From: Podarcis melisellensis
Taxonomy: Eukaryota
Direction: 5' to 3' (one strand)
Assembly: GCA_964234715.1 (NCBI GenBank)
Contig: OZ174277.1
Length of the DNA: 64,000 nt
Made by a program: the position numbers and the translations under genes. The notes beneath the pieces are model-generated. The model searched no databases, had not been told where the DNA came from, and saw only the letters and a list, made by a program, of their open reading frames with translations. Shown here piece by piece: positions 2,527 to 50,070 of this stretch. The stretch's first letter is position 1. Every line of letters starts with the position of its first letter.

Positions 2527-3360
2527 TGTGTGGACAGGAGGAGTCCCTTCCAACCCCAGGTTACTCCCGAGTGGAATAATGACTCAAGACAACGTGCTAT
2601 GGGATTAAAATTGGCCACAACTTTATTAAGTTTCAGATGTAGGGAGACCTTGGCTCAGGCATTGGGCATTCATCCTTCCCAGTCCACAGCCAGGGATCTG
2701 TGGGACATCAAGGTTATCCAGAATGTGTGGGGATTGGGTTGGCTCTGAAGAACATATGTTCAAGCAGAGAGCCCGCCCCCTGTTTTATCGCCGTCACAGG
2801 GGAGAGTTATGACAACCTTTCAGCGAATGGCCAATGCTTCCCCTCAAGACCCCTTTAACGGGGAACCCTGAGATCACACCCCCCCCCCCAATTTATGGAA
2901 GATAGACTAAATGATTCTGCCCAAGGCCTGAAACCGCCAAAGTTGTGACATTTTGCTACAGGGAAGGCAAAACCTGCCAATACAGGAAAATTCCTTTCTG
3001 GCCTTTCAACAGCGGCCTTAACGTAGTAGCACCCACATACCTGTGGAGAAAAGGTTAACTTGCAAAAGAAGGCTTAACTGAGGGAGGGCAGGGTGGGAGA
3101 AGCTCTGGAGCCAACTGACGCTTTCCAGGTACGATTCACCATCTGTTATCTGGGCAGGGCGGTCCCTCCCCTTACCTGGCCGATCCCCTGGCAACGCCTC
3201 CCCAGGTGGGATTGGGCGATTGGCTGAAGTAGGCAGAGACCTCCAAGTATCCAGCCTGGGGAGGGCGAAGCCAGCCCATACTACCAGAAGCCGCATGGGA
3301 TCCGGGGGGCTGTGCACGACCACGTAAAAGGCGCCCCCCATTTGATGTGGGGAGCGGTCG
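2527..3360 (-). mobile_element. Solo A-spacer-B terminal unit of an Ngaro-like tyrosine-recombinase retrotransposon (diverged family)
   Basis: On the minus strand it shares, in order, a C-tract border, the U-rich loop motif, TAGCAAAATGTCACAACT, TGGCGGT, GGGT-N4-CGTTAAAGG, CCAATGCCTG, AATAAAGTTGTGGCC and a CACAC end with the terminal unit of the full element at 42141-42939. It is about 830 bp, has no ORFs, and 'gttat' occurs at both junctions. Confidence 0.8.
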
Positions 3361-6300
3361 TTATATTTTTGTTTTGCTGTGTTTTTATGGAATTGTTTTT
3401 ATATTGTTTGCTTGAAATGCATCCCTGTTTCTTTGTTGCAAGTCACTTTGAGCAGTGTGTGTGTGTGTTGTGTATGGAAAAGTGGCTTGCCGATAAAATG
3501 AAGGGATGAATGGCACAGCTTTTGACAAATGAACATGAACGAACAATCAGGGAATATTTTATATAAAGAAGATAGTGTCCCTGGAACAAGGCTAGCTGCA
3601 ACCGTATCAGTCCCGTGGTGAATATCACAGCTCAAGTCTTGGAAACATAGGAAGTTGCCTCATATGAGGTCAGACTATTTGTTCATCTATCAAAGCGTTG
3701 TCTATTCCAGTGGTGGCTGGTGCTCACTGGAGTAGTACAGCATAAGTGATAGGGGTCAACAGTAAGGAGAACCAGAGTCAAGGAGAGTCCAGTTTTTCCC
3801 CCACCCACCTTCCTGTTGAGTTCTGCAAAGACAACACTAAGACAAAGGAGGAATAAGCTGTTGCCCAGTATCAGCCGCTAGACTGGAAGTAGGGCAGGTA
3901 GAGACTGGTTGAGGGCAGAATGACATTGGTGCTCCTCTTACCCTAATGGACCAGGCTTCACAGGCTCCAACTAGGGTTTCATTCAGAAACCACTGCTACC
4001 TTTTTTCCTTTAACTGAATATGATGAGCATCAAACACTGAACCTTTAGGGTGTTTTTTCCCCAGAATCTTTGCTGTGTAGTTCCATACAACACATGGGCT
4101 TGAAGCCAAGTTTTTTGGTGCTGAAAATTGGGGTGCAGACTTCCACTTAACAAGTAGGTGATTTTAGGCATCTCTCTCAGTGTGTCTCACCTTACAAGTT
4201 GGGAGCATGGCATAATAACATGAATAATACAGTTCAACCTCACAAGCTCCCTTTTGGGACCATTCTCTGATACACCCTGTATGCCCTTCAGATTGATTTT
4301 ATTTGCCAATTAACTTAATGACAGATCGTTGCATTTTAAATATGCACTTTACTCCTTGTTTTTATGTTGCAAAGCTGCTCCAAGAGGATATGAATTGGAA
4401 AAAATGGAAAGGCTGAGTGAACAGTCAGAATAATGTGTTTCCCACATTTCATAAATGGATAATGCATCATATGCTTGAAGGCCACAGGTCTCAGTAATAA
4501 GGAGCAGAAAATGAGTTGCAGGTATAACACTCTAGGAAGCTACCTGTTTTCAGCTGGAAAGCAGAGTCAGAGGTTGCAAAGACTTAACAGGCAACTAAGG
4601 CAGACACTAGAAGAAATCAGCAGCATAAGCAGTCAGAAAAGGGGTCACAAAAGGGCTAAACCAAACAGCAAACACCAACTGATGAATGCAAAGCCTTGTG
4701 GATGTTGGCCAACAGGAAACCTTTTAACTACAACCAGTTAGAATCCCAGATTTTAGACTAGAAAGGAATTATACATAAATTCAGAAAAAGCCCAGCACTA
4801 TAGATATGATCAAGTCCTAATCCACAGTTTCGTAACAGATTTAATAAAAAAAAAAATGTACACCCTTCCCTAGCCCCACACTCTCTTTACTATATCCCTC
4901 AATATCAAAATTTATATGGAGCTTCAGCTTCCTTTCCCTCATTAAATAACAAGATGGAAGAGCCATTGACATTGATTGTGACATAGAGAAGAGTGGCAAG
5001 GTTGGAATTCAAGAGCTCACTGAAAGACATGAGAAAAGTCCTGTTGGATCACCTGAAGGATTCATCTAGTCCAGCATCCTTCTTTCTGCAGTGACCAGAC
5101 ACCTCTGGGAGTGTCTTGAGATCAATGCCACACCACGTTACATCACACAGCATAGTTCCCAAGGCATTCCAGGAATTGTGGCAATTGGGAAGCTGTGGAG
5201 AAAGACCTGTACTATTTCCTAATGATCACGCTTCCTGGAATGCTTTGAGCACCCTAGAATGTAATGTGGCATCATCACTCCAGTGGCATTCCACAAAGGG
5301 CAGCTGGTGAAAGTTGTGGAACAGCCTTGTACCACCCTCAGCAATGTAGTTTAAACAGGAAAGTGGGGGGGGGGAGGAAAGTCCTTAGCTACCTCATAAG
5401 GGTAAATAAGATAAGGAGAAACATCCCTCTCCCCCCCAAAAGAACAACCACCCCACAGCAATCGCCCCATCTTTCAGAGAGGTTAGTTTCACAACTGCCC
5501 ACCAAAAGGTTGAGAAATGAAGTTTTGACATGTTCAACTCAACTTAAGACTGGCTTTGCATCCATTCCATTTCCGCAGGAAATCTTGGGGAAATTCATTT
5601 TAAAAGGGAAAGTACTATGTCTCTTTTATAGATAATTATCAGCATGGCATGTCACCAAGATACCATTACCAGGATTCTCTGGAGGAAAGCATTGCACTAC
5701 AAAAGATAAGACCACAAATGTACTTTATTTGACCATTATTCTCCAGAATCAGTGCCTAGATAGGAGTTTCTCTTCTTAAGGTGGAAAAACACCACAGAGT
5801 GCTAGAAGACTTGGCTGTGGAAAAAAGATAATTCCACCATCCTAAGTTCCTACAAAACCTTCTAAAATCCTTTCTTCACGGAAACAAACAGCATAACTGA
5901 AATCACCCTCGTAATGCATCCTAATGCTGGCTCACAAGTGAGGAAGAGCTGTAGAAAGATTGTAAGATGCTACTTTTGAAAGATGATGCTTAAATCACCC
6001 TCTTAATCCTCTAAAAAAAGCTACATTCATTCTGCAGTGGTCTTTACTATCAAAACAGAAATGAACTCTTAGAACACTGAGAAATACATTCAGGTCCAGT
6101 CCAGATCGCAAAAAGAACATTTAGCTGATTGTTAAAGAAAGAACCAGGGACTGGAACCTTTCCAAAGTCAAACATTCAGATGATTTCAAGTGACATTACA
6201 AAGTGTTTTGGGTCAAGCACATTTGTCACTCACTATGAAGAAAACAGAAGGTGACCGTTTTTATACTGATAATGTTACCAATGTAACCTTTTCATTCAGT

Positions 6301-12046: not shown

Positions 12047-14580
12047 GCTCAGCCATTTCTAATAGCCATTTGAAAGTGAATCTACAAAACTCTTCACCAT
12101 GAAGGGTACTGCTTAAAAACTTGTTTGTAGTGATTTAGGCAGAAACACCAAGGATTAAATGTCGTGGCCAATCTAGAGGTATTTCCTCAAGAAAATACCA
12201 GATGTTGTTTCTGTATGACTGGGTACACACCATACATTTAAATGACATTCTCCTCCCCCCCAAAAATCCTGTGAACTCTAGTGAAAGGTATGGTGTTTAT
12301 ATCAAGGGCAAAGCAACATGCCAAACATTCATGCACAAATATACTCTTTAAAACTAGGAAACTTGGCAGCTTCCAGAACTGCCAAACTCTCTGGGCCCAA
12401 TTCTGCATTCCCGTTGCAAATTAAACTATTAACAAAAGGTTAAACACAGTATTTCATTGCACTGTTTTTGTTTTCATTCAGCATTTTGGACAAGGGAGAA
12501 TCTGGGGTCAGTGACCCTAAAACCTCAATATTACGCAAGCAAGTTTGGACTTTAAGCCAGAAACTTGGTGTAACCATTGAACTTTTAACCTAAATAGTCA
12601 GTGAAGAATTGCTGGCTGGCAGGAGTCCCGCCTGATAAATTTCGGCTTGCTTTGTGTGTATATTTTTAAGAAGCGTCCAACAAAAATGCCTGATTTTGCT
12701 GAGCAAGTCAGTTTGCTGGGCAGCAAATTATGGCTGCAAGCACATTCACTTGGGAGTGAGCCCTATTGAATTTGGTGGACTCATTTCCAAGTAAACATGT
12801 GCAGGATTAGACTGCATAGCTCTTTTTTCTAAGGCCAACTGGCATCCTTCAATTTGCTCCCGTGTGTCTACCAGACTGGACTGAAAATGTAGATAAGGGT
12901 TTTGGCCCTCCACCCTTGTGGATTAGCAAAGGACTTGCTGGTACAACAGGCTATATTTACAGTATCCCCATAAAGTACCCTCCTTGGCTTCTGCCCTCTT
13001 CCATCAGGTTTTGCTGATTTGCTCTCTAATATCTAATCTGTAATGGTACCTTAGATCAACAATTCCTCCCTGAGGTTCCAAAAAGAAACTGCCAATTCAT
13101 TCTTCCTGAACTGAAGTTCTTTACCACACAAATTGGTTTCCACAGCTTTTTCTGTGTAGTTTTAATCCATGATAATCTTCAAGGGATTATTTTCAATCAG
13201 GTATGGGGTTTTTTCCACAGTATTTTACCTGTGCTGAAATACACAGCCTTGAACTCACTGTTTATAAACAGTTTAGCATGGAAAGTTCCCATTAATTCTT
13301 ATTTTTTGAAGGAATCATTATTGTATAGTTGAATAGCCTGCAACAAGCTAAAAGGCCACTAACTAATGAGGCAGCTTCCATAATGTCTGCTTTTGACAGC
13401 AAAGGCTTCTGCTGGCTCTCTCAGCTTCTATGACTATAATACAGAATATGCAAGGCTGCATAGACACTAGACCTTTAAAGCATATTCAAAGCACATTCTT
13501 TCTCACAAAGAATTTTGGGCACTATAGTTTACCCCTCAGGGTTATAATTCCCAGCAACCCCTAACAAACTTTATCTGTAAAATGCCTTGAGTCCCATCAG
13601 GGAAAAAGGCAGACTATAAGTAAATCTATAATAATATAACAACAAATTGCCGTGCCCAGAATGCTTTGAGGGGAGGATGTGTTTCAAATGTCCTCAAATG
13701 TATAGTGTGTACGCTGCCCAAATCATCTAACCAGTTTCCAATCCAATATCCACTTAATAAAACCCAAAGCATTTCCTGAACACTTGCTTTTGAGTGTGAT
13801 CCTTTATGAGTTTTGCCAGAATATGAAGTCCCATTCTAAATCTAAGAAGCTGTTTTGTTAAAGGGATGTGGGGCAGAGCAAATGATTAACAGGACAAAGG
13901 AGCCCTAGGGCTGCTGCAAAGCCTTCCTAGTCAAGGAGCCCTGACATTTCCATTTAATATCAGGGAAGCCAACCTTGGCGACACTTGGCAATGACATCTC
14001 TCCAAAGCTTTAAAATGATTGCTCCTGCCCAAAGCAAACAATTTGTCCAAATCAGGACAAGTGTCTCAAAGGAATGAGGTTGAGCTCAACTTACTAAATT
14101 GTTTGAACAGCAAAACCATTAATCATGGGGGACTGGAGCAGAGGGCAATGAGGGAAGATCGGTTTTCTGAACTGCTGGGCTCTGTGGGGATATTACAGCC
14201 AGGCTTCTTGTTGTCCCTCCCTGGTGTGGAAGGAAAGCCAATGGGTCAGCTACCCTGTAGTACAAATCAGGAAATGATCTCATGCCTTTGCAATCAGATC
14301 TTCAAATATTTAGGCTAAGGAGGTCGCACTGGGAATGCTCTCCATTTTCTTATCAGTAAACAAAAGAACTTTAGATTAATGCTGAGTGAGGAAACATTTT
14401 CCCCCTAAATCTCTAGGGTTCACAGATAGAATGTAATGTGTGTGTACACACACATATACCCCACACATATAGCTCTTTCTGCTGCTGGTTTTCCTTAATA
14501 GCAACCAAGCTTTATGTCAAAGAGGCTTGGAAAGTCTACAGCAAATTGTTTATACTCCTGTGCCCTTTGGAGGTGAATAG

Positions 14581-15551
14581 TAGGGCTGGGTGATATCAGC
14601 TTTTCAACATCGCGGTGTATCGCCAGCCAAACATCACAGTTTGGCAATGCCCCTTCCGACCTTCAGGAGGAGGGGGGGTTGTGGGATCACGACCCCGCCC
14701 ACACTCGCTCTCGCGAGGCTGGCGTCAGCCTCGCGGGAGACAGGGATTCCCTCAATTAGCATACCCTGTGGCGCCAGCCAATCGGCTGGCGGCAGGGGCG
14801 GGGCTTCGTAGGGCCACTTAAGGTCAGGGCAGCCCCTGGCTCGCCCCCTTTCTTCCCTGGAGACGACGCGGTTTCCCACCCACCCGCCCTTTAGGTTTTG
14901 CCACTGACCTTGCTATGGGCTTCGGCTGGTCGCCGCAAGGGGCCTGGTAGGAGTTTTTCCATTTGGCTAATTGGCTGGTTTGGTGAGCCACTTGGTTTTT
15001 TCGCCTACCTCGTAGCAAATCGTCACAACTCCCTCGGTTTTGGCGGTAGGCATTGGCCGGGGTATTATCATGCAGATGAGGTTGGGGGGGAGGAACGCCA
15101 TCACCTCCCCCAATGCTTGAAGGGTAGTTCGTTAAAGGACTCCGAGGGGCGACGCCTCGTCCGAAACCTACGGAGGCTAGGGCCTAAAGCGCGCCCCCGA
15201 GCAGTAACCCCTCGGGGAGCGCCTAGGGATATGCATCTCGGGTGGCTCCCCCTGTTGGTGTTTAACCCTTCCCGGTCAGACCGGATAGTCGGTTAGGGCC
15301 AATGCCTAAAGCCAATACCCTTCTTTCCTGTAATCAATAAAGTTGTGGCCATTTTCGCCCATTAACCTAAAAACTCTGTGTCCGTTGTCTTCATTTATTC
15401 CACCTGTGGGGGGGAGGGAATAGCCACACAATATACCACCACTCAGGCGTGGTGGTGGTTTCACCAGCGATATACTGCTGAGTTAAACCAACATAGCAGT
15501 CTGCTCCTCATACTGGTCCTGGGCGATATATTGATATATTGCCCAGGCCTA
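14581..15551. mobile_element. hAT-type MITE interrupted by an Ngaro-like solo unit
   Basis: TIRs tagggctgggtgatat / atattgcccaggccta, with a perfect 8-bp TSD gtgaatag at 14573-14580 and 15552-15559. Confidence 0.85.
14639..15430 (+). mobile_element. Solo A-spacer-B terminal unit of an Ngaro-like retrotransposon (second family)
   Basis: About 792 bp against 799 bp for A2-spacer-B2 of the full element. Shares TAGCAAATCGTCACAACT, TGGCGGTAGGCATTGG, GGGT-N4-CGTTAAAGG, CCAATGCCTAA and AATAAAGTTGTGGCC. 'caca' occurs at both junctions; CCAAT and GC boxes lie in the A part. Confidence 0.85.
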
Positions 15552-15934
15552 GTGAATAGTAGTAAAATAGCACAAACAGCTATCACAATGGTGCTGGCAT
15601 TTCCACCAGCATTAAAAATACTCCATAGCTTGTGTTGCTGTCACAAGTCCTAATCACCTATTACTCACGTGTAGGGCATAAGCATGCAGAATGGGGAATG
15701 GTTATTGGAACCTAAATATTTTGTGTCCTAGCTGCCTGGAGCTCTTAGTTTTGAACAGGAGCTCACGCAACCACGTAACAGAGAAGGGGAGCACTAGAGG
15801 ATGGGGAGGCAGAACATGATGCAAGCAGTAGCCTTGCAAAAGCCTTCTGGTTGCTCAACCTAGTTAGCACATGCCCATGAGTGGTACAGAGGGAGACACC
15901 AATCCCTACAAAGCACAAGGTGTTGTTGGGAAGG

Positions 15935-35601: not shown

Positions 35602-35814
35602 AAAGCGTGTTCTCCCTAAAAGAGAGCACGTGTTGCGGATGGGGCCAGGCAAAACCCAGGTTGCCAAGCATGATTAGATAGGAGGGGCTTGGAGCAGTTT
35701 GGATATTGGTGTTGCTGAGGATAAATTGATGTTGCCAATTTAGGGGTGGGATTAGTGGCTATTTAAGTAAGGTTCACAGCTTTCTCTTTCTCTTTTGCTG
35801 TGAACATCGGATCT
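35602..35814 (+). repeat. Split direct repeat A1 (213 bp)
   Basis: Identical by eye to 42141-42353. Confidence 0.95.
35705..35766 (+). promoter_or_regulatory. Putative Pol II promoter in repeat A
   Basis: ATTGG at 35705, GCCAAT at 35734, GGGGTGGG at 35743 and TATTTAA at 35760-35766, followed about 25 nt later by a pyrimidine-rich initiator-like tract. Confidence 0.6.
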
Positions 35815-36742
35815 TCAACACCGGAGTGGATCGGCAAAAGAGTTGGTTGTATAAACCCTTGTTCCTTTTCTTCCTCTTCCTTCGTTTCTATCTATTTCTT
35901 ATTTACTTATCCTCCCTGCTAATTCACCCTTCTATTTAATTCACCTCCTCTTATTTTCTAATTGTTGATTTGGGACTCTCATTGGGGGGGGGAGCCTCAC
36001 GGTCCCGGGGGGGGCTTACGGCCCGGTTCTCGGCCGAGCCACTAGACCCTGGACGGGAGTTTGGCCCCTTGCAGGCTGTTGTTTCATATTTTAACCTCCC
36101 CACCCCCCCCAACCTGCATCCGCAGCTGCGTGCGCTGGAGCCTGACGCGGCTGGCTTCGGCCCGGTCGGGCCTCCTCCGTTGCGGCTGCCCAGGCTTCTC
36201 CGCGGCTCACTCGGCCCGGCTGGGCCCGCGCCGCTTCCTCCCACCCCACCCCCTTCCCGCGACTGGGGCCTGTGAGCGCCAGGGGCCTCCTCGGGCCTAC
36301 TCGGCCCTGTCGGGCCTGCGTTGGCCCGGGGACCGGCAGCGGCCTGTGCGGCCCGGCCCCGCCCACCTCCGCTAGGCGCCGGGTGCTGGGATCGGTTGGC
36401 GCGGCCTAGCGGGGCCTGCCCTGCCGGGCCTTCCTTCCACGGCCGCCCCCCCCGTTTAGGAGCGGGCTCCAGGCGGGAGCCGCTGGGGCAGGTAACGACT
36501 TGCCTGGCGTCGGTGTTGGCGGCGCGCTCCTTCCGCGATCGCGGGCCGGGGTTTCGTGCGCTTGAGCCCTGCAGGCCTTTAGGCGATCTGGGGGCTCCCG
36601 GCCGCTCTTGAGCCCCTTCCTCCCCCTTCCCACCATCTCCGCCCCTGTGGTTTTGGGGGGGCGCCGGGTTGGGGACTGGTGGTGATCCTCCATTTTTCAG
36701 GTAATTTGGCGGGAGCGCCATTTTGTTGTGTTCAGGCCTGCA

Positions 36743-36841
36743 GCGCCATCTAGTGGGCCAGCTCCGTAACTGCAGCCGGCTGAGAGCTAGTGCTGGCCCA
36801 ACCTGAGTGGAGCCCTCTAGTGGCTACCTCTTGCATTGCAG
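36743..36841 (-). promoter_or_regulatory. Two tandem CTCF-like sites with upstream motif in the element leader
   Basis: The minus strand reads CTGCAGTT-acggagctggc-CCACTAGATGGCGC and CTGCAATG-caagaggtag-CCACTAGAGGGCTC. Confidence 0.65.
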
Positions 36842-37059
36842 TGTAATTTGTTACTACCCTTGCTATCTGTGGATTTGCTTTTCAGCTGATTAAGCTGCTT
36901 ACATTTTGAGGTCAAAGCCTTGGTCTAAATTGGGTCGTTACTTACCTACTGGTCAATTAATTGCTGAATATTAATTTTATTTGTATTGATTTGCTTAGTT
37001 CAATTTTATTGTTTCTTTGAATAATTTTAATTTTGTTTTATTTTACGCCAGTAGTAGGA

Positions 37060-38586
37060 ATGGCTCCAAAAAAGGCTACAAAGAAGTCTGGTCCGCCCCT
37101 CTCTGCGAAACGGCCCATAAGGGGCCCGTCTCAAGCTCTTCGCTCTCCTGCGCCTGGTCAGTCGTTGCAGCGCATTCAAACCATGGTCTCCAGTTTGGCC
37201 GGCGACCCAGTGGCATTGGCAAGGGTGGAGGCCGAGATGGATGGCCTGCTACACCGCGCCTCCACCCCTTCGACTTCATCAGCAAGGCTGGTTCCTCCTG
37301 CGGGTACCGCGTCCCCAGTGTTGTCATCCAGTGAAGACGAGAGAGAGGCATCATTTGCCGGGGGTGTTCTTCCAAATACGCAGTTGGCTCGGTCGCTGGT
37401 TTTACCTGCCCCGCAGGTCTCTGTGGCTAGGGGTCGTGGCCGGTCCAGGGCCGGGACCAGGAGAAGGGAATCAACCCGGGGACGTGCGGCGCGGGTTTCC
37501 CCCGCGCAGCCTCCAGTAGCAAGTAGGGCAGTGCCGGGGCATTCACAAGTTGTCTCTTTCCAGTCATCTCCAGGCGCTGGGCAGCAGGGCGATGTGTCTG
37601 AGTCTTCAGTAGAGGACAGCCTCCCCCCACCTCCAAAGACCTCTTCTGGAGGGCATCGCCGCCGCAAGAAGAGGTCCAAGAAGCGTGCCAAGCGGAGACG
37701 AAGGGACACCTCGTCGTCTTCTTCAGGTACATCTTCTCAGACTTCTAGTAGCGATGAGGAGGCGTCCTTGAAACTTTATTGGGGTTTTGGAGAGGCCTCG
37801 GGGCTCCCAAAGTGGGTTTGGGAGAGGAGGGCGAACTCCCACAGGGCCAGGTACGGGGCAGTACAAGAGTGTTTGGATGGAGTGTTGGTACCTGAGGTAA
37901 GGGTATCCACCAATTCAGCCAGGGATCTTATCCCAGGGTCACATCTGTCCGCCACATTACGGTCCAGGATCTTGAATGGGCGTTATGTGGATATTTTTAG
38001 CTTGGCCCCCCCTCTCGAGGGCCAGGAGCCCCTGGATAAGGGCTTGCCTCCAGCTAATAAACGTTCGATCTTAGCAAAAGCGGACAGGAATTTTGAGCGT
38101 TGGTTGGATAGTTTCCAGGTTTTTGCTGGAGTGGTTTCCGCGGCTTATCCCAGGAGGTCTTTGCACTTGTGGGTTTATCAGTCCATAGTCCGCTCGGCCT
38201 TTACTATGGCCGGGGAAGCTGCCGCTCTGTCCTACGATCAGAATTTTAGACGTAGAGCGGCCAAGATCCCTACTGCCCGCTGGGATCGAAAAGACTTGGA
38301 TGTCTGGACCACTTATGTGGCCCCTAGAATTGATAAGAAAGCCCCTGATACACAGAAGTTTAAGTCGGCCCCAGCGAGACCTGGCCGTAAGCTGGTCTGT
38401 TGGGACTTCAATAAAGGTACTTGTCCGCGGCAATCCTGCAAATATTTGCATGTGTGTGACAAGTGCTCAGGTAACCACGCAGCCTCCACATGTGCCGGCA
38501 GCCGGCGGCCATTTCGGAAAGGGGGAGGCTCACAGCAGCCTCCTAAAGCAGCTTCCCAAGCTCCTGCCACTGGAACAGGGAAGTAG
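37060..38586 (+). CDS. gag: Ngaro ORF1, Gag-like protein with a basic NLS-like tract and a C-terminal Cys/His zinc finger
   Basis: ATG at 37060 (MAPKKATKK), RRRKKRSKKRAKRRRR, YDQNFRRRAA, and CWDFNKGTCPRQSCKYLHVCDKCSGNHAASTC. Confidence 0.9.
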   Translation: MAPKKATKKSGPPLSAKRPIRGPSQALRSPAPGQSLQRIQTMVSSLAGDPVALARVEAEMDGLLHRASTPSTSSARLVPPAGTASPVLSSSEDEREASFAGGVLPNTQLARSLVLPAPQVSVARGRGRSRAGTRRRESTRGRAARVSPAQPPVASRAVPGHSQVVSFQSSPGAGQQGDVSESSVEDSLPPPPKTSSGGHRRRKKRSKKRAKRRRRDTSSSSSGTSSQTSSSDEEASLKLYWGFGEASGLPKWVWERRANSHRARYGAVQECLDGVLVPEVRVSTNSARDLIPGSHLSATLRSRILNGRYVDIFSLAPPLEGQEPLDKGLPPANKRSILAKADRNFERWLDSFQVFAGVVSAAYPRRSLHLWVYQSIVRSAFTMAGEAAALSYDQNFRRRAAKIPTARWDRKDLDVWTTYVAPRIDKKAPDTQKFKSAPARPGRKLVCWDFNKGTCPRQSCKYLHVCDKCSGNHAASTCAGSRRPFRKGGGSQQPPKAASQAPATGTGK

Positions 38587-40192
38587 TACCCTGTTCTCCT
38601 TGGCACATACCCCTGTGCGGTTACAGCCATTGCTATCATTGTTAGCTCTATACCCTGACAGTGCATCGGCATCTTATTTGCGTGATGGTTTTTCTTTTGG
38701 TTTCAGGATCCCAGTCGCCTCCACCCCTGTAGCTGGGAACCCTGTTAATCAAAAATCGGTTAAGGATATGCCAGAGGTGGCACGCAAGAAAATCGGGAAA
38801 GAATTGGCGTTGCAGCGTATGGCTGGGCCTTTTGCCACCCCCCCTTTTCCTAACTTGCATATTTCACCCTTGGGCATCGTTCCCAAAAAGGCTCCGGGGG
38901 AATTCCGCCTAATCCACAATTTATCTAGTCCTAGAGGCACGTCAGTAAATGACGTAATTCCCCCGGAGCTTTGTTCGGTGAAGTATGCGTCTCTTGATCA
39001 CGCGATCAAGATCATCAGGAAGTTCGGGCGGGGTGCCCTGCTAGCCAAATGCGACATTGAGTCGGCGTTTCGGCTGCTTCCTATTCATCCCGATGACTTT
39101 TGGCTGCTAGGTTTCCAATTTGAAGGGGGTTATTATTTTGACAAAGCTATGCCCATGGGCTGCTCGGTGGCCTGTGCGGCCTTTGAGTGTTTTAGTTCAT
39201 TTTTGGAATGGGCTTTGCGTGAAAAAACCGGTTTGGGCGGGGTTACGCATTACCTGGATGATTTTTTGATGACTTCGGCAAAAAATACGGGTAATTGTGA
39301 GGTGCTTTTGCGTGCCTTTGCCTCCCTGGCGGAGTACCTGGGCGTTCCGTTGGCGGCGGAGAAGACCGAGGGCCCTTCTACGCAGCTGACTTATTTAGGT
39401 ATCTTGCTGGATACGGTGGCCCAAACTTCCAGTTTGCCGCCTGAGAAGATTACCACTTTAAAGAGGGTCATCAGTGAACTCCTTCCCTTAAAGAAGGTGA
39501 CGTTGCGGCAACTCCAGTCGCTGCTGGGTCACTTGAATTTCGCTTGCAGGGTGGTCGCTCCGGGGAGGCCATTCTGCTCACGTTTGGCCAGACTGACATC
39601 GGGGCTGCGGGCCCCGCAGCACAGAGTGCGCCTTCCTCAACAAGTGAGGGCTGACCTTAACATGTGGTTGGAATTCCTAGAGGAATTCAATGGTGTTTCC
39701 TTGTGGCAGGACATTTTGAACCTCCATAATGATTTTCAGGTGCACTCTGATGCGGCGGGGTCATTGGGGTTTGGTCTCTACTGGGATGGTAGGTGGTGCG
39801 CGGAACACTGGCCTCCGGATTGGCGTGGAGAAGCAATAACTCGAGATTTAACGTTCCTTGAGTTCTTCCCCATTGTGGTGGCCGTGCACTTGTGGGTGGA
39901 GCATTTCAGAGACCACCGGGTTTGCTTTTGGTCTGATAACCAGGCGGTGGTGAAGGTACTGGCTAAGCAGTCTTCACGATCTCCGCGAGTATCAGCTTTG
40001 CTGCGGGCGTTTGTATTACACTGTTTACGCTTTAACATAGTGTTTTCTGCCCGCTTTATTCCGGGCATATCTAATGAGATTGCTGATGCTCTGTCCCGTT
40101 TTCAGATGGAGCGGTTCAGGTCCCTGGCGCCACTGGCTCGAGACCGTCCGGAAATTTTCCCGGATCATCTCTGGAACCTTGGCAGCACTTAG
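38300..40192 (+). CDS. pol: Ngaro reverse transcriptase / RNase H
   Basis: 630-aa ORF overlapping gag. RT motifs FRLIHNLS, KCDIESAFRLLP, MPMG, YLDDF, YLGILLD. RNase H motifs HSDAAG, LEFFP, WSDNQ, NEIADALSR. Confidence 0.95.
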   Translation: MSGPLMWPLELIRKPLIHRSLSRPQRDLAVSWSVGTSIKVLVRGNPANICMCVTSAQVTTQPPHVPAAGGHFGKGEAHSSLLKQLPKLLPLEQGSSTLFSLAHTPVRLQPLLSLLALYPDSASASYLRDGFSFGFRIPVASTPVAGNPVNQKSVKDMPEVARKKIGKELALQRMAGPFATPPFPNLHISPLGIVPKKAPGEFRLIHNLSSPRGTSVNDVIPPELCSVKYASLDHAIKIIRKFGRGALLAKCDIESAFRLLPIHPDDFWLLGFQFEGGYYFDKAMPMGCSVACAAFECFSSFLEWALREKTGLGGVTHYLDDFLMTSAKNTGNCEVLLRAFASLAEYLGVPLAAEKTEGPSTQLTYLGILLDTVAQTSSLPPEKITTLKRVISELLPLKKVTLRQLQSLLGHLNFACRVVAPGRPFCSRLARLTSGLRAPQHRVRLPQQVRADLNMWLEFLEEFNGVSLWQDILNLHNDFQVHSDAAGSLGFGLYWDGRWCAEHWPPDWRGEAITRDLTFLEFFPIVVAVHLWVEHFRDHRVCFWSDNQAVVKVLAKQSSRSPRVSALLRAFVLHCLRFNIVFSARFIPGISNEIADALSRFQMERFRSLAPLARDRPEIFPDHLWNLGST

Positions 40193-41079
40193 TTTTTCAG
40201 GGAGTAGCTGCTTCTGTCGCCCCCTCTACTTTGAGGTCCTATGAGAAAGCATGGGCCGATTTTTTGCTATTTAATGGACAGTCAGTAGCTGGGGAGGTTC
40301 TTGCCCCCCATTCTACATCCCAGGTGCTCAGGTATTTAGCACATTTATTCCAGAAGCGCAGGGCAGTCAGGACGCTGCGCCTTCACTCAGCAGCGATCTC
40401 CTTTTTTAGTAAGGCATTCTTCAACAAAGACCCGTGTGGGAAGTTTGTGGTGCGCAAGGCTTTGGAAGGATGGGGGCGATTGCTCCCCTCCGGGCTTCCC
40501 CCCCGACGACCCATCACTTTTGAACTTTTGGCAAAAATGCGCTGTAAATTGCGCAGCATCTGTTGGTCGTCTTTTGAGGCGCGGCTATTTTCCGCAGCCT
40601 TTTCATTAGCCTTTTTTGGGGCTCTGAGGGTAGGTGAGGTGGTACTGGAGCCTAAGCGGGATGGTGGTTCCAGGGGATTATTGCTACAGGACGTGAGTTT
40701 GTCTCCGTCTGAGCTTCAGGTTAACGTCAGAAATTCGAAGACAGACCAATTGGGCAGGGGTGCCATTATTCGGCTCCCGGCGTCGGGGGAACGTGGCCCT
40801 TGCCCTGTAAAAGACCTCACAAAATATTTGGCCTTGCGTCCAGCAGGTGAAGGACCCCTGTTTATTCATGAGAACGGGCGCCCTCTGGGGAGGCATCAGT
40901 TCGCCAGAGTGTTGCGTAAAGCTCTTGCAGCTTGCGGCCAGGTGGCATCGGAGTTTGCACCTCATTCCTTTCGGATTGGTGCTGCAACGACGGCTGCCCA
41001 TTGGGGTTTGTCGGTGCATGGGATTAAAGATTTGGGTCGTTGGAAATCGGGGGCATTCAAAGTATATGTGCGCACATGA
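40087..41079 (+). CDS. Tyrosine recombinase (frame open from 40087; first in-frame ATG only at 40537)
   Basis: Full catalytic set: R (ALRVGE), K (SKTDQ), HxxR (HSFR), W (GRWKS), Y (KVYVR). Confidence 0.95.
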   Translation, partial: CSVPFSDGAVQVPGATGSRPSGNFPGSSLEPWQHLVFQGVAASVAPSTLRSYEKAWADFLLFNGQSVAGEVLAPHSTSQVLRYLAHLFQKRRAVRTLRLHSAAISFFSKAFFNKDPCGKFVVRKALEGWGRLLPSGLPPRRPITFELLAKMRCKLRSICWSSFEARLFSAAFSLAFFGALRVGEVVLEPKRDGGSRGLLLQDVSLSPSELQVNVRNSKTDQLGRGAIIRLPASGERGPCPVKDLTKYLALRPAGEGPLFIHENGRPLGRHQFARVLRKALAACGQVASEFAPHSFRIGAATTAAHWGLSVHGIKDLGRWKSGAFKVYVRT

Positions 41080-41692
41080 TATGGATATGTACTTACATTT
41101 TTTGTGTTTAACCCTAGGTTGGGCTCCTATCCGTATTTGGATAGTAGGCCACAGTATTGTACATTGGGCTGCCGTCAGAGCTCGTCAGTCTGGACTGGGC
41201 GAGGGCCTATGCTTCCCACAACACGTTCAGGTTTCCTGGATCTCCAGACGGGGGATGCTGTGGAGTGAATTCTTACCACTCATGCGAAGGCGCGTTTTCC
41301 AGGATGGTCCTCCTTCAGCGATTGTGGTGCAGCTCGGGGAGAACGATATCGTATCTTCTTCCTGCTTTGGGCTGCGTGCTGCCATTTTACAGGACTTGGG
41401 GGAATTGGCGGCCATGGTGCCTTTTACTACACTGATTTGGTCACAGTTGCTTCAACGCCGCACGTGGCGTGGTAGTCCCTGCCCAGCAGCCACTGAACGG
41501 GTTAGGAAGCGGGTTAATTCCGCAGCAAGCAAGTTGGTGGTGGGCCTGGGCGGATTGGTGATACCTCACCCTCTTATTTCATTCAAGGCTGCTGAACTAT
41601 ACAGAGATGACGGGGTTCATCTCTCTTCAGTGGGGAATGATTTGTGGTTGGATTCAGTGGTGTCCAAGTTGAGGGTCTGGTTTGCTTTGTGA
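40847..41692 (+). CDS. SGNH/GDSL-family hydrolase (domain ~41118-41692)
   Basis: Block I IVGHS, block II RRG, block III LGEND and block V DGVH. Hydrolase ORFs are known from some vertebrate Ngaro elements. Confidence 0.9.
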   Translation: MKDPCLFMRTGALWGGISSPECCVKLLQLAARWHRSLHLIPFGLVLQRRLPIGVCRCMGLKIWVVGNRGHSKYMCAHDMDMYLHFLCLTLGWAPIRIWIVGHSIVHWAAVRARQSGLGEGLCFPQHVQVSWISRRGMLWSEFLPLMRRRVFQDGPPSAIVVQLGENDIVSSSCFGLRAAILQDLGELAAMVPFTTLIWSQLLQRRTWRGSPCPAATERVRKRVNSAASKLVVGLGGLVIPHPLISFKAAELYRDDGVHLSSVGNDLWLDSVVSKLRVWFAL

Positions 41693-41720
41693 GTGGTTGG
41701 CGGCGAGCGTAGGGCTCGAG

Positions 41721-42140
41721 TGGCGGTTAGGCATTGGTTAAAATTGCTTGGTGGAGGGGTATGGATAGGCTGGGCCTGCCCCTCCAATGCTGCTGCTGCA
41801 CGGGTATTCCGTTAAAGGAATTCTGAAGCTTACCATCCCCTTCGTCCAAACCCTGACGGCAGGGTGCGGGCCGTGTAAGCTTCAAGGAGCATGCGGGGTG
41901 TAGCTGAGGGTCTGATTCACAGCTCTGGCTGGCCCTGATCTTGTTCCTCCGAACTGGCTAAGGAGTCAGTGCTGTCCCCCAAGGCGGGAGGGGACAGCTA
42001 GTCATAACCAATGCCTAAGCAACCATTCACAATTTGTATGATAATAAAGTTGTGGCCAAAATTATGCCAAAAACCTTAAACAAAAATCACGTGTCATGTG
42101 TGAGTTATTGGGGTAGGGGTTTTGAAGGACCTCGTCACGC
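41721..42140 (+). repeat. Split direct repeat B1 (420 bp), AATAAA at 42043-42048
   Basis: Identical by eye to 42517-42936. Confidence 0.95.
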
Positions 42141-42353
42141 AAAGCGTGTTCTCCCTAAAAGAGAGCACGTGTTGCGGATGGGGCCAGGCAAAACCCAGGT
42201 TGCCAAGCATGATTAGATAGGAGGGGCTTGGAGCAGTTTGGATATTGGTGTTGCTGAGGATAAATTGATGTTGCCAATTTAGGGGTGGGATTAGTGGCTA
42301 TTTAAGTAAGGTTCACAGCTTTCTCTTTCTCTTTTGCTGTGAACATCGGATCT
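42141..42353 (+). repeat. Split direct repeat A2
   Basis: Copy of 35602-35814. Confidence 0.95.
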
Positions 42354-42516
42354 CCCGCCCGCCCTCCCTTGTTGGGCTTGCGCTTGACCTTGCTTTGCCT
42401 GTCATGGGGTCGTCCGCCTTGGTGCGGGGGCCCAGTAGGAATTTACCAATTGGCTGATTAGTGTGTGCCTTTTGGGTTTTGCCTACTGCTTAGCAAATCG
42501 TCACAACTTGTAAGGT

Positions 42517-42936
42517 TGGCGGTTAGGCATTGGTTAAAATTGCTTGGTGGAGGGGTATGGATAGGCTGGGCCTGCCCCTCCAATGCTGCTGCTGCACGGG
42601 TATTCCGTTAAAGGAATTCTGAAGCTTACCATCCCCTTCGTCCAAACCCTGACGGCAGGGTGCGGGCCGTGTAAGCTTCAAGGAGCATGCGGGGTGTAGC
42701 TGAGGGTCTGATTCACAGCTCTGGCTGGCCCTGATCTTGTTCCTCCGAACTGGCTAAGGAGTCAGTGCTGTCCCCCAAGGCGGGAGGGGACAGCTAGTCA
42801 TAACCAATGCCTAAGCAACCATTCACAATTTGTATGATAATAAAGTTGTGGCCAAAATTATGCCAAAAACCTTAAACAAAAATCACGTGTCATGTGTGAG
42901 TTATTGGGGTAGGGGTTTTGAAGGACCTCGTCACGC
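42517..42936 (+). repeat. Split direct repeat B2
   Basis: Copy of 41721-42140. Confidence 0.95.
42839..42844 (+). terminator. Polyadenylation signal of the full-length element transcript
   Basis: AATAAAGTTGTGGCC is conserved in all three Ngaro-like units, with a GT-rich tract downstream. Confidence 0.7.
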
Positions 42937-43298
42937 AAAATAACAGGCTGAAAAACTCTGGGGGTTTATACCACTTTAAAGAGCTGGCCCATGAGAAATT
43001 ATACATAAAACTGGGGGTGGGGGAGGGGGAGATACCAATAATAAATAAGACCCACAGTGATGAACAGGATTCAGCGAGTGGCCAGAGAGCTCCCAAAATA
43101 ACCCTAACTGGACCAGAAAACAAAGGCCACAATATCTGACTGCCAGTGGCACTGATATGAACATCAAGATGCCCAGATGGATGGCAGTTTTCTATGTGGT
43201 TATATCTGCAACAATCTTCACATGTTTTACTTAGAAATGGAGATTAAAGTTTGAAAGCCAAGAGGTTCTATTTGTGTGGGGCAGGGTAGGTCCTTGTC

Positions 43299-43338
<40 letters not shown>

Positions 43339-43380
43339 TTTATACCCTGCCCATCTGGCTGGGTTTCCCCAGCCACTCAA
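43299..43380 (-). mobile_element. L2-type 3' terminal fragment with (AAT)n tail
   Basis: (AAT)n followed by 'tttataccctgcccatctggctgggtttccccagccactc', as at 49905-50070. Confidence 0.7.
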
Positions 43381-44612: not shown

Positions 44613-45164
44613 CATGATTTTACACACTTTGGGAGAGAATAATGGTCTGAATCACAGAATTAACGCAATATAAGAAAGAAAGAAGTGTGTGTTAAACCTC
44701 AGGACGTGGCTAAAAAAGAAGAAAAACCTTGCATCTCTTCCACTGAGATGCAGATCTCACAGTTGGCCATAACTAGGGATTGAGGAAATCTGTTTGGTTC
44801 ACATTTTAATATAAGCCTACCATTCTAACACATTTCCCAGTAACATGTGAACCAAAACAATACTATCCTTCAAAATTCACCCTTCTCCTAATTTTCCAAT
44901 GCAGTTCACCAACCCAGAAATGAATACTAAAATGCACATATTAGGGAAAGTATACATAAAAATGCATGTTATAAAAGGGGAAAATGTTTGCAAATATGCA
45001 TACATTGGGCAAAATTGCACACTAAAATATGCATGTTAGGAGAAATCCTCACTAAAGCAAATGAATTTGAGAACCTTTTTTTTAATGCAAGCTGATGTAG
45101 AAATGTGAAGAACAGAGATTAAGACTGGAAAAATGAGAAACGTGGAGTAACTGAAATTGACATA

Positions 45165-45399
45165 CAGTGGTACCTCGGGTTACGAACTTAATTTGTTCCA
45201 GAGGTCCATTCTTAACCTGAAACCATTCTTAACCTGAGCTGCACTTTTGCTAATGGGGCCTCCTGCTGCCACCACGCCAAGCGATTTCCGTTCTCATCCT
45301 GGGGCAAAGTTCGCAACCCGAGGTACTACTTCTGGGTTAACGGAGTTTGTAACCCGAAGTGTTTGTAACCCGAAGCATTTATAACCCGAGGTACCACTG
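45165..45399. mobile_element. Tc1/mariner MITE, copy 3 (opposite orientation to copies 1-2)
   Basis: TIR cagtggtacctcgggtta / taacccgaggtaccactg with TA TSD. Confidence 0.9.
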
Positions 45400-46156
45400 T
45401 ATTTGTCCATGACTATGTTCACATCATAAGAACATACCTAGCTGGTAGCTGCTCTGAAGGGCAAAATAAATTTGTATTTGATGCAAGATGTCACTGCCAT
45501 TCCTTCAACATGTTTTCAGATTTTGGAGCATGTTTGCAAACTCTGGGCTCTAGAGCTGAGCTAACCCCTGCTTGATTCAGTGTGAGACTTGCTGAGCTTC
45601 ATCCAAATTCACTGAGAAACAGAACTTCCTCCTACAAGCTTTTGTTGTATGCTGTATTACCCAATGGGACAGAAATTATGGGGCAAAAGGTTTCCACTTG
45701 CCTGGAATCCTATTAAGACATTTTGTTTTACTTCTGGCAGAGTCAGATCTGAGTGAGCAGATAATTTAATGAAAGGAGGGATCATAACAGGCAAAGTCAG
45801 GCTTAAAGGGTGGAGCGGGGCTGGGGGTGGGAAAAGCTTCACTAAATTTCTTGGCGTTCAAGTTTACCCTACTCCTTAAGTTTCAGAGCATGAAGCACAG
45901 AAAGCCCTGAGCCTTAAGAGGGCAAAAGGCCAAAAGCTACATGGGAATAAAGATATAAATTAAACAGAGGAAGGAGAATGCACAGAAGTTCATCCGCCTC
46001 TGACTAGTTTAACAGGCTATTCCCTTCCTTCTCCTGAATGGTTTGTGTTATCGGAGATTTCTAGTGCATTTGAAAGCTTTGCATGGGATTTACCTGAGGT
46101 AAATTCATCCGCGTACCTGAAATACATTTATTGCCTATTCATCAAGAGGACACACA

Positions 46157-47779: not shown

Positions 47780-47959
47780 CTAGAAAAACATCAAACATAG
47801 ATCTATGAGCCTCCAAAAAGTTTTACATTACCCCCTGAAGAATTATTAGAAGCGCTCGCCTACCAACACACTTCTGGGAATTTTTAAACTATGCAATTCT
47901 GTAAAGGCATTCAGATTAAGAAACGGAATCCAGTTAATTGTGCTGTGGCTTACTGAGTA

Positions 47960-48201
47960 CAGTAGTACCTTGGGTTATGAACTTAATTTGTTCCGGAGGT
48001 CAATTCTTAACCCGAAACCATTCTTAACCCTGAGGCGCACTTTCGCTAATGGGGCCTCCTGCTGCTGCCACGCTGCCAGCGTGCGATTTCCTTTCTCATC
48101 CTGGGGCAAAGTTATCAACCTGAGGAACTACTTCCGAGTTAGCGGAGTTTGTAACCCAAAGTGTTTGTAACCCGAAGCGTTTGTAACCCGAGGTACCATT
48201 T
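47960..48201. mobile_element. Tc1/mariner MITE, copy 4
   Basis: Same body as 45165-45399; right TIR degenerate. Confidence 0.85.
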
Positions 48202-48224
48202 TATCGGCTTATGGCAACACTGAC

Positions 48225-49030: not shown

Positions 49031-49903
49031 TTAAACACCCCCCCCCCATGAATATGGTCAGTGAACCACGTCTGTACAGTCAATTTCCACATGTATCATT
49101 TATCCATGGTCCTAAAAAACACTGTTCCATGCACCATCACATCCCTATGTGTCAATGCCAAGGGTCAGATCAACAGCTATTCAGCTGCACATGTGGTTCT
49201 GCTAGTGCATGGTGGCTTTTACCCTATCTCCTCCCCTTTGTGTCCCTTCCATTCCCCACCCTCATTGGCTCTCATTGGGGAGAGTCAGGAGAACCCCAGA
49301 AGAGTATAGGGGGAGGAGTGGGGATATTGTTTGATCAGGCAAGCAGAGATGCTTGTGCTGAAACAAAGGATCACCTGGACACTGCTTCAAATTTCTCTCC
49401 AATACTGCACAAACATATTTTTAGCCACAGCCTTATTTGTCCAGCCAGCATCAAACTGTATTATGGGAGTGATAAGACCATTTGCTGAGTCTCACAACTC
49501 TTTTTATAAATGAAACAGGTGCAGAAATGTAGAGATTTAAGAGGAAAAGAAGGTTCTATCACCATTTTTGTCTGCCTTTTGCAATGGTAAGTGCTCCAAA
49601 TGGCCAGGGCAGAAGGGCATGGTATCTTACGGATAAAGATCAGTGTAAACCATGTCATAGGTCGCAGCAACCTGGCAGACACCTCTGAATTTGCGGCCAC
49701 TGGAGGAAATACAAACACAATCATGGAGATATTTGCTGGCTTGAAATTATGCATTGGCTGGCATCCACGTGATAGGATATATTAGGACCAAAAATCCAGT
49801 GCTGGCACACATCTTAAGCACACCTGGGAAGCTGGGAAGCTTCCCTAAAAGAACATCATACTAAAAAGTATGTTCAGTTAGTTGGAGACAGAGTATGTTC
49901 AAT

Positions 49904-49904
<1 letters not shown>

Positions 49905-49944
<40 letters not shown>

Positions 49945-50070
49945 TTATTATTTATACCCCGCCCATCTGGCTGAGTTTCCCCAGCCACTCTGGGCGGCTC
50001 CCAATCAGTGTTAAAAACAGTACAGCATTACATATTAAAAACTTCCCTGAACAGGGCTGCCTTAAGATCA
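49905..50070 (-). mobile_element. L2-type 3' end with (AAT)n tail
   Basis: (AAT)n followed by 'tttataccccgcccatctggctgagtttccccagccactctgggcggctc'. Confidence 0.75.

Follow-up and report, generated by a model that had tools for sequence, protein, structure and literature searches.

A C-triplet tract at the edge of the internal A repeat is a probable boundary signal in the end rebuilding of Ngaro retrotransposons

What fixes the edge of a repeat in a retrotransposon whose ends have to be rebuilt? The question is raised by an intact Ngaro-type element at 35602-42939 of a 64-kb stretch of lacertid lizard DNA (Podarcis melisellensis, contig OZ174277.1; "the window" below means this whole stretch). 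Models of end rebuilding reportedly go back to 1985 for DIRS-1 and to 2004 for Ngaro, and to our knowledge no primer, stop or transfer signal has been identified so far in the tyrosine-recombinase retrotransposons. In the window element, a tract of four C triplets begins directly after the last base of A2, the internal copy of repeat A. A comparison of twelve repeat boundaries indicates that this tract is probably a conserved cis-acting replication signal of Ngaro that sets the 3' edge of A2, and that it very probably marks a step in the rebuilding of the ends. How it would do so is less certain. That a quadruplex in the minus-strand cDNA halts plus-strand synthesis at the A2 edge is the reading that we rank first, but only tentatively and with considerable doubt; the existence of some replication signal that sets the boundary is far more likely than this particular mechanism.

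The element itself is readily identified. Self-BLAST gives the order A1, open reading frames (ORFs), B1, A2, the spacer X and B2, which is the split direct-repeat arrangement (A1-ORFs-B1A2B2) of Ngaro elements, a group of the order DIRS. Its internal region I contains a Gag-like ORF with a CCCH finger, a reverse transcriptase, a tyrosine recombinase and a fourth ORF. It is a young Ngaro-type element in a lacertid lizard genome, an assignment made because both repeat pairs are 100% identical and because the reverse transcriptase and tyrosine recombinase ORFs are present. The reverse transcriptase ORF matches RVT_1 in Pfam (E=2.7e-12, exceeding the gathering score) and has 379 homologues at E<=1e-20, found in lizards, frogs and sea urchin, the closest of which are uncharacterised proteins of Podarcis muralis and Zootoca vivipara. 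The recombinase is of the tyrosine type and not a DDE integrase: the match to Phage_integrase (E=1.9e-5) scores 25 bits, slightly below the Pfam cut-off of 27.1, and PF00589 is found at the same place in the gene calls of three other elements (L005, L089 and L090). The methyltransferase domain that separates DIRS and PAT elements from Ngaro gave no Pfam match in the five ORFs scanned, each of at least 100 amino acids.

The original prediction held that the identity of A1 and A2 ends at 42353 and that the tract follows directly, and on this point self-BLAST and the sequence agree. The base following 42353 differs from the base following 35814: A1 continues into TCAACACC and A2 into CCCGCCCGCCCTCCC, so that the tract lies at offset 0 from the A2 end, with loops of 1/1/1 nt between the G runs of the minus strand. 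Two solo copies of other families, each consisting of A, X and B, were said to carry comparable tracts at the equivalent position. Both tracts are present at the coordinates proposed, and their equivalence is borne out in two ways. The solo of the second family aligns end to end, at 92.6%, with positions 1-781 of the A2-X-B2 part of a Podarcis element (L002) in which the A end is set by its own A1/A2 pair. In addition, the tract starts 146-148 nt upstream of the conserved spacer motif GTCACAAC in all three window copies. Motifs of four G3 or C3 runs with 1-2 nt loops occur only four times on both strands of the 64 kb, at 42354, 14875, 3082 (G-rich on the plus strand) and 36240 (inside I), and the first three of these sites are at the A2-X position.

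For a wider comparison, loci around reverse transcriptase homologues were retrieved and A and B were defined in each by self-BLAST; contigs from metagenomes and from metagenome-assembled genomes (MAGs) were also searched for usable branch points. Twelve A-X boundaries were resolved, that of the window and eleven elsewhere (Table 1), and the hosts of five of them (L089, L090, L093, L016 and L038) are probably invertebrates or protists. Whether the A boundary is tied to the tract in other Ngaro copies had been set beforehand as the refuting test of the original prediction. The two coincide in 12 of 12: nine tracts begin at offset 0 from the A2 end and three at -1, and no positive offset occurs.

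Anchoring the sequences at the boundary shows information content close to its maximum within the tract and close to zero throughout the 40 nt upstream and the 30 nt downstream, and the flanks cannot be aligned between families. Lengths differ widely between the elements (160-360 nt for A, 152 to about 1260 nt for X), which implies that insertions and deletions have been common everywhere except between A2 and the tract. The strand of the tract is constant and its C triplets are kept, with loops that are mostly 1 nt long and vary by family (G, A, T or C). In C content, the opening 15 nt of X match or come close to the richest 15-mer of each element (in nine full elements, only 0.02-0.26% of windows are equal or higher), and this high rank holds in AT-rich elements too. 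Other short-loop motifs number at most one per element of about 7 kb and have no conserved place. The placement of the tract is therefore not a matter of chance, given that three of the four short-loop motifs in 64 kb are at the A2-X position and that the tract is the C-rich extreme of the elements.

The remaining loci were handled as follows. Eighty metagenome contigs came without assembled split repeats, and only L016 and L038 gave a usable branch point between A-to-I and A-to-X. The repeats of L044, L049, L047, L075, L025, L052 and L041 could not be assigned to A or B and were counted neither way. Contigs from bacterial MAGs, where the element is contaminating host DNA, yielded one good element (L093), and the viral contigs searched held no relatives. 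A gecko locus (L003) and an ENA locus (L008) had no detectable repeats. A further Anolis sagrei locus, L091, is without a recognisable A1 and was left uncounted, although the position of its tract, CCACCCACCCACCC, 52 nt downstream of a TATA-like box agrees with the other copies. L091 (5081-6911 and 13766-19215) is embedded in long arrays of an approximately 90-nt tandem repeat, and part of its B repeat recurs at 15622-15832.

The transcription signals have a bearing on the mechanism. TATA-like boxes lie 55, 56 and 63 nt upstream of the A end in the window element, the Podarcis muralis element L001 and the Xenopus laevis element, and AATAAA lies 60-110 nt upstream of the B end. From these positions the genomic RNA is predicted to start about 25-30 nt before the end of A1 and to finish inside B2. 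It should thus possess a short 5' tail of A, a full internal copy of B1A2 and the read-through segment B1-A2-X. X itself is, on the same prediction, confined to the read-through RNA, and RNAs ending at the B1 poly(A) signal would be without it. Because direct repeats are unable to fold back, the part of A1 that is missing has to be restored with the help of a second strand, and it is at this step that a defined stop would matter. Such a stop could come no later than the last base of A: a strand that ran on into X would end in a 3' mismatch and could not be extended.

We propose that the read-through RNA (the last 25-30 nt or so of A1, I, B1, A2, X and part of B2) would be copied into a single-stranded minus cDNA, in which the tract, as (GGGN)3GGG, would form a quadruplex that directly adjoins the A2 complement on its 5' side. 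Plus-strand synthesis, begun upstream around the start of B1, would proceed across B1 and A2 and stall at the first G. This would yield a "strong-stop" DNA made up of B and A, with the last base of A as its 3' terminus, which would anneal to the complementary copy of the A1 tail found at the minus-strand 3' end; the predicted 25-30 nt A tail at the 5' end of the RNA would supply the homology that such a transfer requires. Extension of both ends would then restore a complete B-A ahead of I. In this scheme the architecture of the element and the position and quadruplex-type composition of the tract are observed, whereas folding, stalling, the site where the plus strand starts and the transfer are inferred.

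A quadruplex in a template arrests polymerases at the base preceding its first G. The quadruplex stop is ranked first because such an arrest matches offsets of 0 and -1 and the lack of positive ones. More generally, a polymerase block at the A2 edge predicts a one-sided offset, a constant strand and short, variable loops, all of which are observed. The minus strand of the window tract has the four G runs and short loops expected of an intramolecular quadruplex, and a canonical quadruplex motif is present at seven of the 12 boundaries and in both window solos. G4Hunter scores of the minus strand lie between 1.88 and 2.81 at all 12 boundaries (2.12 for the window tract), with flanks at about zero. 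The minus strands of 11 boundaries, L093 being left out, were folded with ViennaRNA using DNA parameters and a quadruplex term. A three-tetrad quadruplex is part of the minimum free energy structure in the window element, L001, L002, L004 and L006, all of which are canonical.

Several considerations weigh against a quadruplex stop. Five of the 12 tracts are non-canonical. Those of the Anolis element L005 and of L089, L016 and L038 combine three C3 runs with one CCNC, so that a bulged quadruplex is the best that they could form, and that of the sea urchin (L007) is more degenerate still. In the folding, L005 gave no quadruplex, and L007, L016 and L038 gave marginal two-tetrad structures only. 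The Anolis element combines 100% identical repeats with a non-canonical tract, from which it follows that a strict canonical motif is dispensable for recent activity. The claim that the G3 tracts are kept while the loops vary thus stands for the three window copies and for seven boundaries, and fails for the five with CCNC or a more degenerate sequence. The further claim that a quadruplex makes the stop at the A2 edge is likewise supported in part: the exact one-sided offset fits, and the five non-canonical tracts, including that of the recent Anolis copy, do not. The 12 boundaries share ancestry and are not 12 independent trials. Many of the shorter, distant Ngaro-like metagenome contigs are without such a tract, in a setting where repeats are unassembled and the boundary is undefined; several of the distant contigs have poly-C runs only, or no C-rich tract downstream of the reverse transcriptase. 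The mechanism also has difficulties of its own. Because the stalled 3' end would be paired with the template from which it was copied, its transfer would require strand exchange. A quadruplex is, moreover, a leaky block, and the copying of X still requires the plus strand to pass it.

The exact, one-sided offset is explained equally well by a boundary signal that involves no quadruplex, in which reverse transcriptase or Gag would recognise the G-rich cDNA or the C-rich RNA, or in which an annealed C-rich RNA fragment would persist as a roadblock; in both cases the point at which a DNA strand stops or changes template would be set. Such a signal is compatible with the five non-canonical tracts, and the element does encode a Gag-like ORF with a CCCH finger. 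However, no protein of such specificity is known for Ngaro elements, the strict 1-nt spacing of the C triplets suits a stable quadruplex better than it does protein sites, and we know of no resistance to RNase H among hybrids of RNA pyrimidine with DNA purine, which counts against a roadblock made of RNA. We regard it as an unlikely explanation. Similarly unlikely is a C-patch on the sense RNA that binds PCBP/hnRNP K-type proteins or Gag and marks the genomic RNA for packaging, stability or translation control. KH-domain proteins prefer three to four C-patches, the tract has no intramolecular partner, and a signal in X would pick the replication-competent RNA, since RNAs terminated at the B1 poly(A) signal lack X. 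This leaves unexplained the zero spacing from the A2 end, when all other spacings have changed between families, and KH proteins accept variable spacers whereas those of the tract are almost always 1 nt. The absence of a partner comes from duplex scans of the element RNA, which found scattered G-rich coding segments in no conserved place and none that is a conserved pairing partner; the tract is therefore not one half of a helix. An inverted repeat (I4) joins a segment of B1 to the 3' part of the tract with 80% complementarity, in the window family only, and an Rfam search returned no relevant family.

On double-stranded DNA the tract could be a cluster of GC, CACCC or CT boxes for Sp/KLF/MAZ-type factors, whose core motifs are CCCGCCC, CCCACCC and CCCTCCC, and it does lie just downstream of the A2 promoter, about 25-40 nt past the predicted start site. 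Nevertheless, it is lacking after A1, the copy that must drive the genomic RNA, the changes of loop would swap the binding factor from family to family while the orientation never flips, and a promoter box need not adjoin the repeat edge exactly; we think this improbable. The position is also the classic one of a primer-binding site (PBS), a conserved motif of about 15 nt at offset 0 from the 3' end of a repeat (0 or -1 in 12 of 12), as at the retroviral U5/PBS border, and DNA synthesis could be imagined to begin there from a G-rich primer. Yet all 12 tracts open with CC(C) and not TGG, which makes pairing with a tRNA CCA end impossible; the loops vary by family and the element encodes no complement, having neither a sense-strand short-loop G motif nor a conserved partner; and cDNA begun at the tract would never copy X and B2, which are both inherited. 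A PBS analogue is accordingly quite improbable. There is even less to recommend a 3' splice site at the start of X, with the tract as the polypyrimidine stretch of an intron that removes B1-A2 from the read-through RNA. A weak excess of YAG after the tract (by inspection, within 17 nt in nine of 13 copies, often as TAG followed by G, where about 35-40% are expected) and a GTGAGT about 30 nt upstream of B1 in the window element and L001 speak for it; the YAG site corresponds to 42369-42385 of the window and has the same place in L001, L002, L004, L005, L006, L007 and L090. The window copy, however, has no AG for more than 30 nt 3' of the tract, a C-triplet periodicity is foreign to splice tracts and the exact offset stays unexplained, so that splicing is very improbable. 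Least probable of all is that the tract has no function and is an ancestral C-rich stretch or a compositional effect. All copies descend from one ancestor, and shared presence alone is not independent evidence, but between hosts as distant as sea urchin and lizard the flanks can no longer be aligned, whereas the tract retains almost full information content at zero offset and ranks as the most C-rich 15-mer of each element or close to it. Further models were rejected. A polypurine tract priming the plus strand is incompatible with a tract made of pyrimidines on that strand and placed on the 3' side of the repeat, and minus-strand priming at the tract, a hepadnavirus-like capped-primer shift and formation of the RNA 3' end at the A2 edge each lose X and B2 or lack required signals.

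The quadruplex stop calls for a plus-strand start at or near the beginning of B1, and a second conserved candidate signal is located there. The I-B1 junction consists of a G-run, GGGG(G)A, a hairpin and CTGT, after which B invariably opens with GGCGG. The stem of the hairpin differs in sequence between families and its pairing is kept. The signal is common to the lizards, the frog and three further elements (L089, L090 and L093), AT-rich ones included; TGGCGG spans the I-B1 junction and not the junction of X with B2. In the window the signal appears as a G-rich stretch and small hairpin at the 3' end of I, directly 5' of B1. It may be a plus-strand start or another replication signal and is presumably not a tRNA-type PBS, to judge from tRNA 3' ends. 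A retrovirus-like two-signal logic in metazoan Ngaro elements, in which hairpin-CTGT-GGCGG would start the plus strand and the quadruplex would stop it, making B+A a discrete strong-stop DNA, is rather doubtful. If it were true, B+A would be the functional equivalent of a long terminal repeat (LTR) and the split direct repeats its footprint; the two signals would be the first defined pair of cis-acting replication signals of any tyrosine-recombinase retrotransposon, and a DNA quadruplex would replace the tRNA block of retroviruses.

The proposed stop resembles the plus-strand strong-stop of retroviruses and LTR retrotransposons, where a fixed block at the edge of the terminal repeat (U5/PBS) produces DNA that is then transferred to complete the other repeat, and where a conserved motif likewise adjoins the repeat at offset 0. 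The retroviral block is a modified base in the tRNA that serves as primer, and transfer depends on PBS complementarity, whereas in Ngaro the proposed block is a structure in the template DNA, the homology would be the last 25-30 nt or so of A, and there is no tRNA-type PBS. The only relative that has been studied experimentally, DIRS-1, makes linear single-stranded cDNA, and its primer was unknown as of 2020 (PMC7192593). Its internal complementary region (the Cappello 1985 model; PMC7192593) is comparable in that an internal copy of the ends rebuilds termini missing from the RNA, again with single-stranded cDNA. The repeats of DIRS-1 are inverted, so that its cDNA can fold on its own internal complementary region; those of Ngaro are direct and require a second strand.

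Quadruplex-type motifs are no novelty in retroelements. The LINE-1 3' untranslated region (UTR) carries conserved ones. Those of LTR retrotransposons favour the minus strand (79% in maize elements), and human immunodeficiency virus 1 (HIV-1) quadruplexes near the central polypurine tract promote strand transfer (PMC5838962). The plant LTR and LINE-1 motifs resemble the Ngaro tract as conserved retroelement motifs of quadruplex type and in minus-strand bias, but they lie inside LTRs or UTRs and are tied to the efficiency of transcription, translation or retrotransposition, and none has been reported to adjoin a repeat boundary or to act as a strand-transfer stop. The HIV-1 G-quartets share the link between structure and template switching in reverse transcription. 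They are, in contrast, intermolecular RNA quadruplexes of the genomic plus strand that raise recombination, where the Ngaro proposal is an intramolecular DNA quadruplex that stops synthesis on the minus cDNA. A bird-genome preprint reports Ngaro elements enriched in Z-DNA and not in quadruplexes. We found no description in the literature of a quadruplex or C-tract at Ngaro A2, in a search that lay outside Goodwin & Poulter 2004, where an earlier mention is possible. Retroelement quadruplex motifs, their minus-strand bias and the link between G-quartets and strand transfer are therefore known, and what appears to be new is a quadruplex-type motif adjoining a split-direct-repeat boundary from echinoderm to squamate.

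The 15-nt motif at the repeat edge gives a concrete handle on Ngaro replication, open to mutation and to assays with short oligonucleotides. Should a quadruplex stop prove real, DNA quadruplexes would gain a new role, that of defining a repeat boundary in reverse transcription. Should it not, no other non-coding landmark of these elements is better conserved, and the tract can serve as a practical marker for annotating the A2-X border and A-X-B solos.

Table 1. Features of the Ngaro element and solos in the window, and signals at the repeat boundaries of the elements compared. In boundary sequences, lower-case c is the last base of A. Positions in rows headed by a locus handle are those of that locus.
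Feature	Position	Strand	Remarks
Repeat A1, left end	35602-35814	+	213 nt, 100% identical to 42141-42353 (self-BLAST)
TATA-like TATTTAAG in A1	35760-35767	+	55 nt upstream of A1 end
Internal region I, ORFs	35815-41720	+	5.9 kb; Pfam matches, ORF list
I-B1 G-run/hairpin, window	41690-41726		
Repeat B1	41721-42143	+	423 nt, 100% identical to 42517-42939 (self-BLAST); AATAAA 42043-42048
Repeat A2, internal A copy	42141-42353	+	TATA-like TATTTAAG at 42299-42306
C-triplet tract	42354-42368	-	CCCGCCCGCCCTCCC (+) = GGGAGGGCGGGCGGG (minus, first-strand cDNA); first 15 nt of X
Unique spacer X	42354-42516	+	163 nt; further conserved motifs, e.g. GCAAATCGTCACAAC
Repeat B2, right end	42517-42939	+	AATAAA 42839-42844, 101 nt from end
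Complete A-X-B solo, second family	14645-15431	+	tract CCCACCCACCCGCCC at 14875-14889
A-X-B solo, third family	2525-3345	-	tract 3082-3097, GGGAGGGCAGGGTGGG on + strand; left limit exact (B end at 2525), right limit approximate
L002, I-B1 G-run/hairpin	14618-14675		
L004, I-B1 G-run/hairpin	13265-13332		
L005, I-B1 G-run/hairpin	13238-13305		
L006, I-B1 G-run/hairpin	13318-13385		
L089, I-B1 G-run/hairpin	13066-13133		
L090, I-B1 G-run/hairpin	13237-13304		
L093, I-B1 G-run/hairpin	5103-5180		
Window, lacertid lizard, first bases after A2			CCCGCCCGCCCTCCC
L001, Podarcis muralis, first bases after A2			CCCGCCCCCCCTCCC
L002, Podarcis muralis, first bases after A2			CCCACCCTCCCGCCC
L004, Hemicordylus capensis, first bases after A2			CCCTCCCTCCCTCCC
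L005, Anolis sagrei, first bases after A2			CCCACCACTCCCGCCC
L006, Xenopus laevis, first bases after A2			CCCACCCTCCCTCCC
L007, Lytechinus variegatus, first bases after A2			cCCCACCTCCATCCCC
L089, eukaryote contig (ENA), first bases after A2			CCCACCCTCCCGCCAC
L090, eukaryote contig (ENA), first bases after A2			cCCACCCACCCTACCC
L093, host DNA in Sedimenticola MAG, first bases after A2			CCCACCCACCCACACCC
L016, metagenome contig, first bases after A2			CCCGCCCACCTCTCCC
L038, metagenome contig, first bases after A2			cCCACCCACCACACCC

Beyond the boundary itself, the tract region, the end of X and the start of B are present in very many genomic copies, as seen in contigs of four public sequencing runs matched to 41000-42990. 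In contigs of run X13 (genomic, from a related organism) the summed depth over the end of X and the start of B, at 42474-42540, is about 25 times that over the middle of A. The conserved core formed by the end of X and the start of B is therefore common to very many copies and families, the majority of which are probably solos. Part of a motif (T)AGGTTGGGCTT(T)GC after the tract is common to the window element and the Hemicordylus element.

The ends of the window element have features of their own. B1 and A2 overlap by 3 nt, AAA, at a B-A junction that reads CACGC AAA GCGTG. The same AAA is common to both element ends and to the internal B-A junction (35602-35604, 42141-42143 and 42937-42939) and lies within this palindrome, which occurs in the window family and L001 and not in the other families. 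The flanks of the element are without a target-site duplication. From its sequence context the shared AAA looks like the crossover core of the recombinase.

Within region I of the window element there is a second C-tract, CCCACCCCACCCCCTTCCC, at 36240-36258, 426 nt into I, and a G-rich run on the sense strand at 36655-36674, 841 nt into I. In L001 a C-tract of looser form occurs at I+334; no counterpart was found in the other families. A perfect 14-nt inverted repeat, TTAGGCATTGGTTA / TAACCAATGCCTAA, pairs 41727-41740 with 42005-42018 (and also 42523-42536 with 42801-42814) across a 264-nt loop, joining the start of B to the region just upstream of the B poly(A) signal. A perfect 12-nt complementarity connects AGGCAAAACCCA of A2 (42186-42197) with TGGGTTTTGCCT of X (42473-42484). 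Downstream of the element are two copies of a repeat resembling a short interspersed element, at 45163-45402 and 47958-48204 and 89-92% identical, and two copies of a repeat ending in an (AAT)n microsatellite, at 43265-43378 and 49872-49990.
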